From: Phaeosaccion multiseriatum
Lineage: Eukaryota; Protista; Ochrophyta, other classes
Reading direction: 5' to 3'
Length of the DNA: 64,000 nucleotides
Assembly: GCA_965112735.1 (NCBI GenBank)
Contig: OZ218954.1
Coordinates: forward strand, 434,001 to 498,000
Positions 229-64,000 of the stretch are shown in pieces. Made by a program: the position numbers and the translations under genes. A model generated the notes under the pieces. That model saw only the letters and a list, made by a program, of their open reading frames with translations. It was not told where the DNA came from and searched no databases. Position 1 is the stretch's first letter. Every line of letters starts with the position of its first letter.

Positions 229-23110
<22,882 letters not shown>

Positions 23111-54973: not shown

Positions 54974-57900
54974 TTACTCGAGCTTGACAATGGTCCTTCC
55001 GTCCTCCATACGAATCACCACGGGGCCCTTCCCCTTGGCGGCGGGCTTCTTGGCGCCCCCCAGGCCAACAGGGTGATTGTCCCCCAAAGCAGCAGCATCA
55101 TCATCATCGTCACCCTCTTCTCCAGCAAGCTTCGCAGCACTTCTTCCGCCCACTCCGCCCATCGCTCCCGAAAGAGAAGAAGAAGCAGGGCCCTCCTCGT
55201 CCTCCTCCTCCTCCTCATCTCCCCAGTCGTCGTCTTCATCCCACTCGTCATCGTCATCATCATCATCCCAGTCATCATCATCATCATCATCATCATCCCA
55301 GTCATCATCTTCATCATCATCCTCATCCCCCCGACCCCCCCTCGCCCTCTTGCTGCCACCACTGCTGCCTCCACTTCCCTTCGCACCGACCGGACTCGAA
55401 CCCGCGCCCAAGCCTGACCCCAATCCTGTGCCCGGCCCGGAGCCAGAGACGGAACCGACCCTGCCGGCAGCGGTGCTCAGACCAATGCCCTGGCTGCCCC
55501 CCCGGGTGGTCTCCACCCCAGCTCGGATACCCCCTCCCCCTCTTCCTCCCCTCCCTTTGACCCCGCCTTCCCCGCCATCCGTCCTGACACTTGATAGCGC
55601 GGAGTTGAGCCATCGAAGATCATCATTCTCCTCTCGCCGAGCCCCCACCTCCTCATCGTCATCATCGTCATCATCGAGGTCGTCGTCGTCGTCATCATCA
55701 TCGTCCCAGTCGTCCAACCAACCAAGCTCGTCATCGTCATCATCACCCCCTCTTCCTCTCTTGCTCCCGCTGATGCTGAAGAGGCCCCCATCCTCCACCC
55801 CTGCGTCATCGAAACTCATATTCAGTCCATCCCCGTCTCCATCCAACCGATATGCTGCCAGCATGGCCCGATTTTCTCTCTTTTCTTTCTCCTTCATACG
55901 CTTCTCCTTCTGTCGCTGTTTCAGAGCCTTCTCCTTCTCCTTCTTTAGCAATTTCTCCTCTCTCTTCTTCGCCCTCTGCCGCTTCGCCTCCTCTGACTCG
56001 GCCCGCGCCAGTTTGTTGCTCTGGAGGAAGAGGAGGACGAGGGGAAGAGAGGGGGGGGGGCGGAGGAAGTGGAGCAAGGGGAGCAGGAAGAGGAGGGAGG
56101 AAAGGAGCGAGGGAGGGAGGGCGGGAGGGAAGGAGGGAGGAAGGGAGGGAGTGTGGAGAGAGGCAAAGGGTTAGGGAGAAGAACTGCGACTCAAGACTAC
56201 ACACACTTCACTCCTTCTCTTCCTCTTCCTCCTGCTCCTCCTCGCTCTCCTCCTCTTCCTCTTCCTCCTCCTCCTCCTCCTCCTCCTCCTCCTCCTCCTC
56301 CTCCTCCTCGCTCTCCTCCTCCTCCTCCTCCTCCTCCTCCTCCTCCTCCTCCTCCTCTTCTTCTTCTTCTTCTTCTCTTCCTCTTCCTCCTGCTCCTCCT
56401 CGCTCCCCTTCTCGTCCACGTCCTCCTCGTCGTCCACGTCCTCCTCGTCGTCCTCGTCCTCTCCCTCCTCGTCGTCCCTCTCTCATGCCCTCCACTCACC
56501 GCCAGTTTCTCCGCCCTCCGGATGCTCCTCTCCTTCTTCTGTGCCTCCTCCTTGGCCAGTTGACGCTCCGTTTTGGGCTTCGTTGACCTCGGGTACCTGT
56601 GAGGGGATAAGTCAATGAGATGATGATGAGATGGTAAGTCAGTGATAAGACGAAGTCAGTGGCGTGCTGTTGTGGCGAGGTAATTGTCGATAGTCTACAC
56701 CCACCCACGCCTTCACTTCCACCCCACATTGCAACATCACAACCCATACTTCCTCCCTTCCTGCATCCCTCCCTCCATCCCTCCTTCTCTCCCTCCCCTC
56801 CCTTCATCTCCCTCCTTCCCTTTATCCCTCCCTCTATCCCTCCCTCCTTCCCTTCCTACTCCCCTCCCTGCCTACTACTCTCCCTCTCCGCCTCCCCTCC
56901 TCTCAGCCCTTCTCCTCTCCCTCCCCTCCCTCCCCTCCCTCCCCTCCCTCCCGTCCTCTCCCTCACTCCCTCCCCTCTCTCCCTCACTCCCTCCCCCCTT
57001 GCCTGCTTCTCTGCCTCCCTCCCCTCCCTCCCCTCCTCTCCCTTCCCCCCTCCCTCTCTCCCTCCTTCCCTCCCTCCCTCCCTCCCCTGCACGTACCTCT
57101 TCTTCCTCCGTGTGGCCGTCCTCGGGGCGTCCGGATCCACACCCGACGCTATCAACCTCTCCCTCCTCCCTACACACACACATACACACACATCCACACA
57201 GAGATACACACAGACAAACACACACACATACACAGACAAACACACACATATACAATTAGCATGGTTCGGTCGACTCCGTATGTCAATATATACATAACAT
57301 ACACACACTTATATTACATAAATACATACGTATTGTCCTCACCTTCCCGCATGCCGTCCCTAATCTTCAAGCGGTAGTCGGGATCATCCCTCCACTTTGC
57401 CTTAATGGCGTCGCTGATGGCCTGTGAGTTTCAATTTGTCATTCGACAGTTTGAGTGTCCAATGGATGGATCGAGCGAGGTAAGGGAGGGAGGACGGAGG
57501 GCGTGAGTGAGTGCGTGAGTGCGTGAGTGAGTGCGTGAGCGAGTGAGTGAATCAGTGAGTGAGTCAGTCAGTAAGTGAGTGAGTGAGTGAGTGGGTGAGT
57601 GAGTGAGTGAGTGAGTGTGTGAGTGAGTGAGTGAGTAAGTGAGTGAGTTGCCAGGCCCTCTAACTCTATATAGTGCCATCCACTACCATCCACCCCCCTT
57701 ATCCACACGCCCCTTCCCCATCCACTGCCATCCATCCACCCCAAATCCACAACCCTCCCCATCAAACCGAAACTCAAACTGACCTTGCGATGCCCCTCCG
57801 ACTTCCTCATGGTGCCATCCCTCATTCTGGAGGCTCTGTATTCGGGATCACGCCATTTGGCCTTCAAGTTGGCGCTAATCTTGCTGCGCACGTCCTGTTT

Positions 57901-58874
57901 GAGTTGGAGTTGGAGTTTTGAGTTTTGAGTTGGAGTTGGAGTTTGGGGGTGGGTGTTGTTTTAGTGACTTAGGGTTAGGGTGTTCTTCTTGTAACGAGTC
58001 GTACAGACAACAGGGAACACAATGGAAGGCGGGAAACACACCTCAAGTAGAGACACATGTGACCGGAAAACACACCAATAACGAAGGGACACACGTGACC
58101 GAAACCACCTCCAACGTAGAGACACACGTTACCCTCCGCACCTGAGGAATGGCCTTGGACCGCATGGCTCGGAACTCCGGGTCCTTCCACATCTCCTTCA
58201 CCTAGTCAGGGGTGTCAGGTGTCAGGTGCCAGGTGTGAGGGGTGTCAGGAGTCAGGTGTCAGGTGTGAAGTGCCATGGGGTAATGCCGAAAATATTCACC
58301 TCTGTTCTTTTCTGTCTCTCTCGCGAGTACCCAGAGGGTATAAGGTGCCAGGTGTCAGGTGTCAGGTGTCAGGTGTCAGGTGTCACCTCCCTCCCTCCCT
58401 CCCTCCTTACCCTCCTGACCCTTCACAACAAACGCCCCTCGCCCCACCTGTCTCCTCCCACTCACGTAATCACTCACTCACTCACTCACTCACTCACTCA
58501 CTCACTCACTCACTCACTCACCCACTCACTCACTCTCTCACTCACTCACTCACCCACTCAATCACTCACTCACTCACCCACTCAATCACTCACTCACTCA
58601 CTCACCCACTCACCCCACCCACCTCATCCCACCCCACCCCACCTCACTCCACCAACCCACCCGCGCACGCACCCACACATCCACCTACCCACTCACCCAC
58701 CCCCTGTCCTGACACCCACCCACCCACTGACTTACTCAACTCACCTTGGCGCTAATCTTGGCACGGGTATCGGGTGTATGAGCTATGCCTTTCCTATTGG
58801 GCAGATTCTTCATGCGAGCAGCCTTGTACTCAGGGTCGGCCCACTTGGCTTTGAGAGCGAGGCTCAGCTTCTGC

Positions 58875-59436: not shown

Positions 59437-60544
59437 GAGGAGGAGGAGGAGGAGGAGGAGGAGGAGGAGGAGGAGGAGAAACTGCCACCCCTGCACGAAG
59501 AGACTTCAAATGAATGAGTCAATCCACTCTGTTCGTTCCTTACTTGAATCTTTCGAGGTGTTACGGGAAAGGGGGGAGGGAGGGAGGGAGGGAGGGAGGG
59601 GAGGGAAGGGAGGGAGGGAAGGGAAGGGAGGGAGGGAAGGGAAGGGAGGGAAGGGAAGGGAGGGAGGTACAGGCACAAGGGCCCGCTTGCTTACCTGCGA
59701 TCTTGGCCTTTGTCTCTGGAGAGTGCCCCTTGCCTTTGTTCCAAGGCACTTTGCCCCTGTTAGCGGCGGAAATCTTCGCTTTGGATTCCGTACTATGTGC
59801 GATACCGCCATTCTCCGTCAGCACATGCCCGTTTAAGGTCAGCATCGGGCTTGTTGGTTGTCCATCAGCTGCTGGTGCGGCGGCTGTTGTGCTCTTCGAC
59901 GAGGACGATAGCGACGCGTCAGCCCCCGCCTTTGGCTTTGGGGTCTTCGCCTTCGTCGGCTTCTTGGCTGCCTTCACATCATCCCCAATGCTTTCGCTTT
60001 TGCTGTTCTTGCTCTTGCTCTTGCTTTTGCTGGTTGTAGTGGTGGTGGTGGTGGTGGCGGCGGCGGCGCTTCCTGCCGCACTGCCCAAGGCTGTGTTGCT
60101 GCTGCTACTGCTACTACTGCTGCTGCGGTTACTTATTCTATTAGTACGTTGGATACTGCCACACAAATCCAAACCAGCCCCCCCAAGCCCCACCGGAGCT
60201 CCTCCTCCACCTCCACCTCCCCACCCCGCCGCTGTCGTTGCTGCACGCGCAGGTGTATAGTGCTGCCGTCGTAAGGGGCCACGCCACCGCTCGATGCTGC
60301 TGATACTGCGACTATTGATGCCATGCAAGCGGCTTCTACTATCGCCCCCGCGGGTCCTACGGCCTACCCTGCTGCCACCGGCCCATCTACTATTGCTGCT
60401 GCTGCTGCTACTAACGCCCTCATTGATGTTCCCGCCATGCTTGAGTAGAGTGGCAGCAGGAGCGGTGATCCATCCTGAGACGGACAGTAAGAGCACCAAA
60501 GACAACACCACCAGCAGGGGCTCCTCCACACGAGCCCGCTTCAT
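54974..60544 (-). CDS. NUMOD3 (nuclease-associated modular DNA-binding domain) repeat protein with KWxDPEYR repeats and acidic tail; putative bipartite plastid targeting leader
   Basis: ATG 60544, MKRARVEEPLLVVLSLVLLLSVSG-WITAP followed by an S/R-rich stretch. NUMOD3-like: HSTESKAKISAANRGKVPWNKGKGHSPETKAKIA and HTPDTRAKISAK. Repeats: KAKWADPEYK, MWKDPEFR, KAKWRDPEYR, KAKWRDDPDYR. About 9 exons; Asp-rich last exon ends at 54974. Confidence 0.75.
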
Positions 60545-61268
60545 TTGGGACCAGCTTCAAACCCACGTGTGCTGTCCTGTTGTGTGAATGCTGATCTGCT
60601 GCCAACCCTCCCTCTTCCCTCGCTCCCACAGTAGTAGCAAGTCCCAGCTGGAGAAGCAAAAAAAACAAAAAAACATATGACACCTCGGCACCTCAGAATT
60701 TCCCCTGTGAAACCTGGAGCACCAACACGTAAATATAGAGCGTTACATTATTAGCAGTCAGAAATTTCCGGGGTCTTGCGGGGATGCGGACCCAGGGGGG
60801 CACGTGCTTGCCAACCTCCTCGTCCCAGCATGCAGGCACTTTCCGCCCTAATTGGCGACAGGAGAGCGAGGTGGGGAGAGAAATCACGTAACAGGTAAAT
60901 CGTTTGACGAGCGGCGGGCAAACCGGGAGAGGCACGGGCGGGCGGTGTGCGTGGTGAGGAAGAGAAGGGGGAGTGAGGAGAAAGACTACTACAAGCAATG
61001 CATAATCCACGGAACATTTTCTTCTCCGATTGAGATTGGACTGCCTCCTGCCTCTCCTCTTCGCACATTTTATGGCTGCTTTGTCTCACCGCAACCTCCT
61101 CCTGTCTGCTGGCTGTGCGAATCCACTGCTCTGCAGGCTTCTCCTTAGCTAATTCATTTCATCAAACCTTTATTTTTCTTTCTTTCCCCTTCCCTGTTTC
61201 TTGCTTGCCTGCCTTTCGTCGCAGCGGGCATTTGGAGCGTCTGCGAGACTGCAGCCATGCTCCCCCCC

Positions 61269-62629
61269 ATGAAGCAGAACGGCTTCGGGAGGTGGGCCCT
61301 CAGTCTGGTGCTGTGGTGCCTCCTCGCAGCAACACCGGGTGAATGTGGTGAGTGAGTGATGGGCACTGGCCGCCCTTTTCCCTGGGCCGGACTCTGTCTC
61401 CGTACCTGATCTCCGTCTGACTCTCCCTCCCCTCCCCCTTCTCTGACATCTCCTATCGCCCTGTTCTTCCTGACTTCCTCCACCCCATCGTCCTCCTCGC
61501 TCATCCTTGTTCTCTCCATCATCGACTCTTCCTGCCTCTCGCCCTGCCTCGATAAGCAACCCCCATCGCGTGCTTTCCCTCCTCGGGCAAGAGCCTCATC
61601 TCATCTCACCTGACTGCCAGCTAATCAGCACCCCTTTTTCCTTGCCTCACCTGGCCTGGCCTGGCCTGGCTGCTGTTGTTCCGTGTGGCGAGTCCGACTT
61701 TCACGGAATAGCCCTCAGCCAGGCCAGCTCTATTGAAGTTGTATCCACCCGCCCACTAACGCGCCCTCGCACTGCTGCTCACCGCCCTCCTTTCCCTGTG
61801 CGGCCTCCTCACTGCCCCTACTTCTCCGTGGTTGTGCTACATCTTTCCTATCTTTCCTTGCTTGACCACACTCTCCCTCCTCTTGCCTGCTGCATGAGAA
61901 GCCTCCTTCGCACCCGGCACTGGCATTTCAGAGCACATTTTCATCCCTCAGCCGGGCGTCACTCGCGACGAAGCGATGGATATATGTGCGGCCAATGGGG
62001 CCGCCCTCGTGTCCGTCAACGACCAGACCGAAGACGAACACGTCAAGGCTCTCATCCCAGATATCAACAACGCCCATGTCTGGGTTAGCTTCGAGCGGGA
62101 AGCAGGCACCACCCGCAGCACAACAGCGTTCAAGTGGGCAGACGGCACGGCGACGGCGGAGAACACGATGGCGGACGATGAATGGGGCTGGAAGACCAAC
62201 CAGCCGAACAGTAGGGGCAACGACCAGCTCTGCGGCTCGTATTACTTCGGAGGCGGCCTGGAGCCCGGCTGGAGCGATGTTCCCTGCAGCGACCCTGGCC
62301 CTGTGGCTGGCTTCGTCTGCGAGCGAGGCATAGGTGCGTAAGGTAGTGGCCTGAAGAGGGCTTGGTTGGAAGTGGCGGTACCACACTATTGCGCGCGCGT
62401 TGCTTAAAGGGGAAACGCCCTCTTCATCCTCTTCCACCTCGCCTCTCCTTCTTCATGTTGTAGGTTGTTCACGATCATCACCACCTCCTCCTAGTCCACC
62501 ATCTCTTGCTCTACAGCCCCCCCCCCCCCCCTCTTCCCCGCTTGAAGGGAAAGCGCCTTTTCCTCCTCATCCCCGCTCCTGCTCTTCCTCCACCTCCACC
62601 ACCTCCTCCTCCTCCTCCTCCTCCTCCTC

Positions 62630-62695
<66 letters not shown>

Positions 62696-63432
62696 CACCA
62701 ACTCTTCCACCACCACATCCTCCTCCCCCGCCTCCTCCTCCAACAAGTATTCCACCCCCCTCTCTTCCCCTTCTGGTCTAACCTCTTAGTCTGCATCGTA
62801 TTTCGGGCCCTTAGGCACTGATTTGAATTCACCCGCCCCCCAACACACCCTTCCGCTGCTACTCGTGTCTTCCTCCTTTTGCTCGCGTCTTCCTCCTGCT
62901 GCCGTGCGGCCTGCTTCACTTGCGGCCGCTACTCCTCGAATGGTTGTGACACACCATGGGTGGCTGTCACTGAGCAGTGGACTTCACCCAGAGCAATACC
63001 TACACCTCTTCGGCCTCGGAGTACTTCTACGTCCCTCAGCCTGGCGTCACTCGTGACCAAGCGACTGCCCGGTGTGAGCTGAATGGGGCCGCCCTCGTGT
63101 CCGTCAACGACCAGACCGAAGACGAATACGTCAAGGGACTCATCCCAAGTATCAACGAGTTCGAAGATGACCATGTCTGGGTTAGCTTCGAGCGGGACCC
63201 AGGTACCACCCTCAGCACAACGGCATTCAGGTGGGCAGACGGAACGACAACGCCGGACGTTATGGCGGACGATGATGGATGGGGCTGGAAGACCGGCCAG
63301 CCGAACGATGCCGGCAAAGGTCAGCGCTGCGGCTCGTATTTTTTCGGAGGCAGCGGGGGGCCCGGCTGGAGCGATGATCCCTGCAGCGGCACTGCGGTTG
63401 GCTTCGTCTGCGAGCGAGGCATAGGTGCGTAA
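61269..63432 (+). CDS. Secreted multi-domain C-type lectin, one lectin domain per exon; probably continues beyond the window
   Basis: Signal-peptide exon 61269-61347 (MKQNGFGRWALSLVLWCLLAATPGEC, phase 1, GTGAGT donor). Lectin exons 61932-62333 (402 nt) and 62978-63424 (447 nt), both phase 1-1. C-type lectin hallmarks: C..NGAALVSV...E, VWVSF, F.WADG, W...QPN, C...WSD.PC...FVCE. Reading through each donor gives GIGA*. Confidence 0.8.
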
Positions 63433-63702
63433 GGTAGTGGCCTGAAGAGGGCTTGGTTGGAAGTGGCAGTACCACACTATTGCGCGCGCGTTGCTTCAGG
63501 GGGAAACGCCCTCTTCATCCTCTTCCACCTCGCTCCTCCTTCTTCATGTTGTAGGCTGTTCACGATCATCACCACCTCCTCCTAGTCCACCATCTCTTGC
63601 TCTACAAGCCCCCCCCCCCCCCTCTTCCCCGCTTGAAGGGAAAGCGCCTTTTCCTCCTCATCCCCGCTCCTGCTCTTCCTCCACCTCCACCACCTCCTCC
63701 TC

Positions 63703-63759
<57 letters not shown>

Positions 63760-64000
63760 CACCAACTCTTCCACCACCACATCCTCCTCCCCCGCCTCCT
63801 CCTCCAACAAGTATTCCACCCCCCTCTCTTCCCCTTCTGGTCTAACCTCTTAGTCTGCATCGTATTTCGGGCCCTTAGGCACTGATTTGAATTCACCCGC
63901 CCCCCAACACACCCTTCCGCTGCTACTCGTGTCTTCCTCCTTTTGCTCGCGTCTTCCTCCTGCTGCCGTGCGGCCTGCTTCACTTGCGGCCGCTACTCCT
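61944..64000 (+). repeat. Tandem ~1091-bp duplication (lectin exon + intron containing CCT and TAC microsatellites), at least ~2 units, truncated by window end
   Basis: GAGCGAGGCATAGGTGCGTAAGG at 62321 and 63412; the introns downstream match apart from a few substitutions and microsatellite length. Confidence 0.95.

Follow-up and report, generated by a model that had tools for sequence, protein, structure and literature searches.

Near-identical introns between divergent domain exons in a putative C-type lectin gene, probably of an ochrophyte alga

The lectin locus and its predicted structure

The window analysed here, a 64-kb stretch of eukaryotic DNA with 57% GC and an abundance of microsatellites, closes with a locus that is best explained, judging from its sequence, as the 5' part of a gene for a C-type lectin with several domains, either secreted or located at the surface. 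The exon-intron structure of this gene is predicted (Table 1), and begins with a signal-peptide exon that includes a hydrophobic core (hydropathy up to 2.7) and has its start ATG at 61257, with a second in-frame ATG at 61269. Two further exons, A and B, both in phase 1-1 under the predicted splicing, each correspond to one module. They share the donor GTGCGT, with a donor-to-donor distance of 1091 nt, while in-frame phase-1 acceptors are found at 61899, 61902 and 61932 for exon A, and at 62975 and 62978 for exon B. An earlier note on this DNA had described a signal-peptide exon followed by phase 1-1 exons, each holding one whole lectin domain in units of about 1091 bp; the sequence agrees with this description, and all four of the peptide pairs quoted there for exons A and B are present. 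The note was also correct in counting two visible exons, since no lectin exons besides A and B were found in the 64-kb window. Intron 3 runs to the end of the window, which implies that a further exon probably lies just past 64000. Intron 1 gave no blastn match to introns 2 and 3, and is non-homologous to them.

Both lectin exons are preceded by tandem NAGNAG acceptors, at 61896-61901 (GAGAAG) and at 62972-62977 (GAGCAG), each of which sits behind an AG-free stretch of approximately 160 nt. This arrangement suggests an acceptor inherited from a common ancestral unit, and possibly a distant branch point.

Table 1. Positions of the predicted parts of the lectin gene, of the divergence strata within it, and of two other genes in the window
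Feature	Position	Strand	Remarks
ARM/HEAT-repeat-like multi-exon gene	~16000-23100	plus	weak Pfam hits; very long trinucleotide tracts
NUMOD3-motif gene	59561-60544	minus	Pfam E 4e-15
Signal-peptide exon	61257-61347	plus	30 codons + 1 nt; phase-1 donor GTGAGT; predicted from sequence
Intron 1	61348-61901	plus	unique sequence
C-type lectin exon A	61902-62333	plus	phase 1-1; QPN and WSD motifs; splicing predicted
Intron 2	62334-62977	plus	644 nt; (CCT)10(ACT)21 microsatellite
Older homogenised stratum	62308-62520	plus	last 26 nt of exon A and 5' part of intron 2; 8/212 differences (4%) from the next unit; change-point analysis
Youngest stratum	62521-62936	plus	0 substitutions in 390 aligned nt against intron 3
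C-type lectin exon B	62978-63424	plus	phase 1-1; QPN and WSD motifs; splicing predicted
Intron 3	63425-64000	plus	ends at window edge; (CCT)4(ACT)18 microsatellite

Other features of the window

The lectin gene is arranged head to head with a gene carrying the NUMOD3 motif, with about 710 nt between the two start codons. The N-terminus of the NUMOD3 gene product is signal-like and continues into a Trp and a Ser-rich stretch, an arrangement which we take to resemble the bipartite targeting signal (signal plus transit peptide) of secondary red plastids. Further upstream, the (GTGA)n and (TCAC)n microsatellites at 57485-57648 and 58460-58623 form an inverted pair, being 164 nt long, 83% complementary, and separated by 811 nt. 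The ARM/HEAT-like gene includes a run of about 100 ACT units at 21947-22247.

The window also carries a dispersed 12-mer, (A/T)GTTGGTGATAC, which occurs at 31 sites with at most one mismatch, against 0.2 expected, on both strands between 557 and 49131. Many of its copies lie in long open frames, where they are read as AVGDT or LYHQL, and the motif, possibly a protein-binding site or the relic of a short repeat, is absent after 49131, the lectin gene included.

Domain identity and the putative binding site

Both exons match Lectin_C (PF00059), with E values of 1e-10 and 3e-10 and scores of 42.7 and 41.2 bits, the curated cut-off of this family being 22.6 bits. Structure prediction from a single sequence yielded a pLDDT of 32, while the AlphaFold model of exon B based on a 124-sequence alignment reached a pLDDT of 86 and a pTM of 0.81, and Foldseek matched that model to Mincle, langerin and CD23 with probability 1.0. 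The two helices and four conserved Cys residues of the C-type lectin fold are found in the model (C32, C117, C135 and C144 are retained), and both exons retain the full set of four structural Cys residues as well as the core Trp.

The residues expected to bind Ca and sugar depart from the usual pattern, and do so in the same manner in the two domains. When aligned with the family, exons A and B both carry QPN at the EPN/QPD position, the Glu position two residues ahead of the third Cys is occupied by Gln, and the WND position reads WSD, so that the ligand set of Ca site 2 is non-canonical in both. The earlier note had placed variation at the specificity motifs; these three are in fact the same in both exons, and the primary Ca/sugar site is therefore predicted to be shared by domains A and B, with their differences located in the surrounding loops and elsewhere. 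In the ligand region, point estimates of dN/dS, from two sequences, range from 1.2 to 2.2, and amino-acid changes affect 11 of 30 positions, as against 27 of 102 in the rest of the domain, a difference that is not significant (P = 0.36).

In their fold, and in the presence of tandem domains after a signal peptide, the lectin exons are like multi-domain C-type lectins such as those of the mannose-receptor family, the bivalve multi-CRD lectins and clam MmCTL4 (PMC12842671). They differ from these proteins in sharing only about 25-35% identity with them, in the replacement of WIGL by WVSF, where the WIGL Gly becomes Ser, and in the substitution of Gln for the Glu ligand. In MmCTL4, where QPN and WSD are likewise found, the binding of mannose and xylose is weak and depends on Ca (PMC12842671), and by analogy with this clam lectin, sugar binding by the domains described here is plausible. 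The putative lectin would bind glycans in a Ca-dependent fashion, through a common primary site flanked by differing loops, and could serve in the recognition of microbes, prey, mates or substrate.

Homologue searches were run exon by exon. When exon B, alone or together with exon A, served as the query of word-indexed protein searches, nothing was returned, in a setting where only proteins of similar length were visible; an exhaustive protein search yielded only generic C-type lectin domains at about 25-40% identity, and an Atlas search only generic Lectin_C clusters. The orthologous locus was not found in metagenome and viral scans, ten open reading frames of the window had no counterpart in the collection searched, and among approximately 15 billion proteins no close relative of the lectin was found. 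Nor was an algal C-type lectin with near-identical introns between divergent exons described in the literature searched, in which most subscription journals were not represented.

Divergence of exons and introns

The most conspicuous property of the locus is the disparity between its exons and its introns. Outside a microsatellite gap, introns 2 and 3 are 98.6% identical, with 8 substitutions in 576 aligned nt, and their (CCT)n(ACT)n tracts differ in length by 27 nt. Exons A and B differ at 65 of 396 aligned nt and at 38 of 132 amino acids, in addition to in-frame indels (Fisher P = 6e-19 for exons versus introns). These counts bear out the contrast between near-identical introns and divergent exons to which the earlier note had drawn attention.

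It is of importance that the contrast extends to silent positions. Silent divergence of the exons, pS, is 0.20 (18/92), as compared to 0.014 (8/576) for the introns (P = 4e-11), and the four-fold sites of unchanged codons alone, with differences at 7 of 49, exceed the same intron count with P = 5e-5, a result that still holds when the intron rate is set at its upper bound (P = 3e-4). Four methods place the exon dS between 0.23 and 0.29, or about 15 times the intron rate; dN is 0.17, and the whole-exon dN/dS of 0.60-0.76 is high for a folded domain. The diversifying selection that had been claimed to lie behind the contrast is not borne out by this ratio, silent sites being as diverged as replacement sites. 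Whether the exon divergence is mainly synonymous, a point to which the earlier note had tied its reading, depends on the measure: by counts it is not (Nd about 47 versus Sd about 18), while per site pS is at least as high as pN.

With silent exon sites so much more diverged than the introns, a single recent duplication cannot account for both. A recent duplication followed by fast positive selection was ruled out as well, the silent exon sites being too old. The comparison thus supports a contrast that is far beyond chance and calls for recombination between units, in which the exons are, to judge by their silent sites, old paralogues, and the introns appear to be recently homogenised.

Divergence is also distributed in strata along the unit. 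The exon body differs at 60 of 369 positions (16%), and the two strata that follow it (Table 1) are progressively younger. The main change-point falls at 62308-62320, that is, 14-26 nt ahead of the donor at 62333 and directly past a 6-nt indel, where divergence drops as a step, so that the peak is bounded at the exon end (the 3' side being the one compared). Within the exon no gradient is seen, the halves differing at 31 of 184 and 29 of 185 positions. A 45-nt identical run within the exon (P = 0.014) may represent a short conversion tract, or merely a conserved core. Three such strata would be expected from repeated exchange tracts.

Exchange between units and alternative explanations

The pattern is rather probably the product of repeated gene conversion, or unequal crossing-over, of adjacent units, whose tracts end at the exon either by selection for distinct domains or by a block that mismatches and indels impose. 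An ancient tandem duplication of an exon-plus-intron unit would have built the array, and neighbouring units would have gone on exchanging DNA by either route, with the result that differences between introns were erased. Selection in favour of binding domains that differ would have purged those exchanges that overwrote an exon, or such exchanges would have stalled at accumulated mismatches and indels, and the outcome would be old, differing lectin domains set between young-looking introns. Conversion would thus be the process, and selection its barrier. A model of conversion combined with purifying selection predicts introns that are more diverged than silent sites (10.1101/2025.10.29.685298); the reverse order, in which silent exon divergence exceeds intron divergence, has been recognized as the signature of selection against conversion in the L/M opsins and in RNase1 (PMC3213168, PMC3924837). 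Two observations speak against this reading of the lectin locus. For the single exon pair available, dN/dS is not significantly above 1 and binding-site changes are not significantly clustered, and exon A, as the edge unit, would escape homogenisation even without selection.

The latter point leads to a neutral explanation, which is considered unlikely, in which a block consisting of the 3' part of the intron, exon B and the 5' part of the intron was duplicated by a nested series of recent unequal crossovers whose breakpoints lay in intron 2. Exon A would then be an old terminal copy, shielded by the unique sequence on its upstream side and by a mismatch barrier that reinforces itself, and no selection on specificity would be needed. 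That exon A is the first unit, next to the unique intron 1, fits this proposal, as do the stepwise fall in divergence from 5' to 3' (16%, 4% and 0%), the dN/dS below 1, and the terminal introns of spider silk arrays, which are likewise exceptional (PMC9779670). It accounts less readily for the coincidence of the main breakpoint with the end of the exon, which, for a target of about 50 nt within the 1090-nt unit, would be expected by chance about 5% of the time, and for the lack of a divergence gradient within the exon.

A more adventurous interpretation, judged improbable, would see the identical introns as dedicated handles by which lectin cassettes are frequently, and possibly somatically, swapped, gained or lost, or are alternatively spliced, generating a variable receptor repertoire. 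Symmetric phase 1-1 exons permit in-frame gain, loss or skipping, 600 nt of near-identity make a good recombination substrate, the ligand-region dN/dS point estimates exceed 1, and oyster bindin provides a precedent in which intronic recombination, microsatellites and the splicing of lectin repeats are joined (PMC5712786). The specificity motifs are invariant, however; the orphan, inverted or inactivated lectin exons that would be hallmarks of an Ectocarpus-like system are absent from the 64 kb, and even for brown algae there is no demonstration of somatic recombination (PMC11378527). On a wider scale, to which we give little credence, near-identical introns throughout the genome could be the handles by which symmetric exons, each encoding a domain (lectin, LRR, ankyrin, PKS modules), are exchanged, with whole lectin domains being swapped, gained or lost within and between loci, in the germ line or the soma, to give an algal repertoire of variable glycan receptors.

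Two further explanations concern the intron itself, and both are regarded as very improbable. One holds that the intron is conserved for its function, in that it forms a structured RNA, serves as a docking element in splicing, or conceals a Pro/Thr linker exon, and it may point to an open phase 1-1 frame rich in Pro and Thr at 62495-62746. The donor of this frame is weak and its start implausible, and function would not yield 0 differences in 390 nt across 0.25 dS of time. A structured RNA was rejected, there being no near-threshold Rfam match (best score 20.7 bits versus 49) and no excess of folding energy over mononucleotide shuffles (z of +0.7 and +0.4). The other attributes the identity to assembly or polishing, in which a single intron consensus would have been collapsed across units, and the 390 nt with zero differences do adjoin a microsatellite; nevertheless, the introns remain distinguishable by 8 substitutions and by the lengths of their (CCT)n and (ACT)n tracts, the 1.1-kb units are anchored by unique exons, and a collapse presupposes introns that were already near-identical. 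Independent insertion of a mobile intron was also discarded, given the same position in both units, an identity that extends into the exon, and the absence of any other copy in the window. As regards the Pro/Thr-rich frame, which is probably a chance occurrence, it extends through the microsatellite of the intron, and the 27 nt by which intron 3 differs in length are a multiple of three.

Relation to known systems

Exchange between units that is halted at the exons has its closest parallel in the primate L/M opsins, where conversion has homogenised the introns, exons are more diverged, silent sites included, and the explanation given is selection against exon conversion (PMC3213168, PMC3924837). 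At the lectin locus, intron divergence is likewise significantly below both exon and synonymous divergence. The opsins are encoded by separate genes, two in number and lying about 24 kb from each other, their tuning sites are known, and proof has come from comparison across species, whereas the units of the lectin locus are domain exons inside one gene, seen in one genome only. By analogy, it is the opsins that the locus would most resemble in the way it works, with the process transferred to the interior of a gene for a multi-domain lectin.

Other repeated systems share some of these traits. The SSSGP arrays of the Hessian fly encode secreted proteins with conserved introns and flanks and a diversified mature coding region, for which short conversion tracts have been proposed (PMC2955719); they are whole-gene tandem repeats under strong positive selection, unlike the intragenic lectin repeat with its overall dN/dS below 1. 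The MaSp2 spidroins of Argiope are built, as is the lectin, from intragenic exon-intron units, with introns that are about 97.6% identical and exceptional first and last introns (PMC9779670), but their exons are homogenised too, while the lectin exons are 16% apart. Sperm bindin of the Pacific oyster (reviewed in PMC5712786) combines tandem lectin domains, intronic recombination, intronic microsatellites and a role in recognition. It differs in its F-type fold and in the highly variable intron that recombines in mid-domain, and both positive selection and alternative splicing have been demonstrated for it; the lectin introns are near-identical and lie between domains.

The ROCO-LRR and NB-ARC-TPR genes of Ectocarpus, from a probably related algal lineage, resemble the lectin gene in devoting one symmetric exon to each module of a candidate recognition protein (PMC3341825, PMC11378527). 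Their repeat exons are 72 nt long or TPR-sized, they encode intracellular signalling proteins, and they are accompanied by inverted or inactivated spare exons; within the 64-kb window no such spare lectin exons were found in introns. In the account of Zambounis et al. (2012), LRR/TPR exons have been shuffled, inverted and inactivated within a region that is highly recombined and not conserved, and neither homogenised introns nor gene conversion is mentioned (PMC3341825). The precedent for conserved introns that had been claimed from Ectocarpus does not match this account, and neither the recombined, unconserved intervening DNA nor, in the two sequences compared, the site-level positive selection of those genes is seen at the lectin locus. 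Filing the locus with Ectocarpus exon shuffling was rejected, the hallmark spare exons and unconserved intervening DNA being missing. The pattern appears to be the known signature of conversion held back by selection, and is not yet evidence for an immune system based on exon shuffling.

Significance

Opsins, RNase1 and gall-midge effectors have already supplied examples of the pattern as such. What would be new, as read from this sequence, is an intragenic array of C-type lectin domains in which introns have been homogenised and exon divergence preserved. If the interpretation in terms of selection is true, the locus offers a small and measurable example of how selection can resist gene conversion within one gene, in a lineage, probably that of an ochrophyte alga, whose recognition receptors are poorly known. 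The step in divergence marks domains that the organism may keep different, and which are good candidates for ligand tests. Were the same inverted pattern to hold at many other loci of the genome, it would provide a model for the recombination-driven diversification of modular recognition proteins and enzymes.
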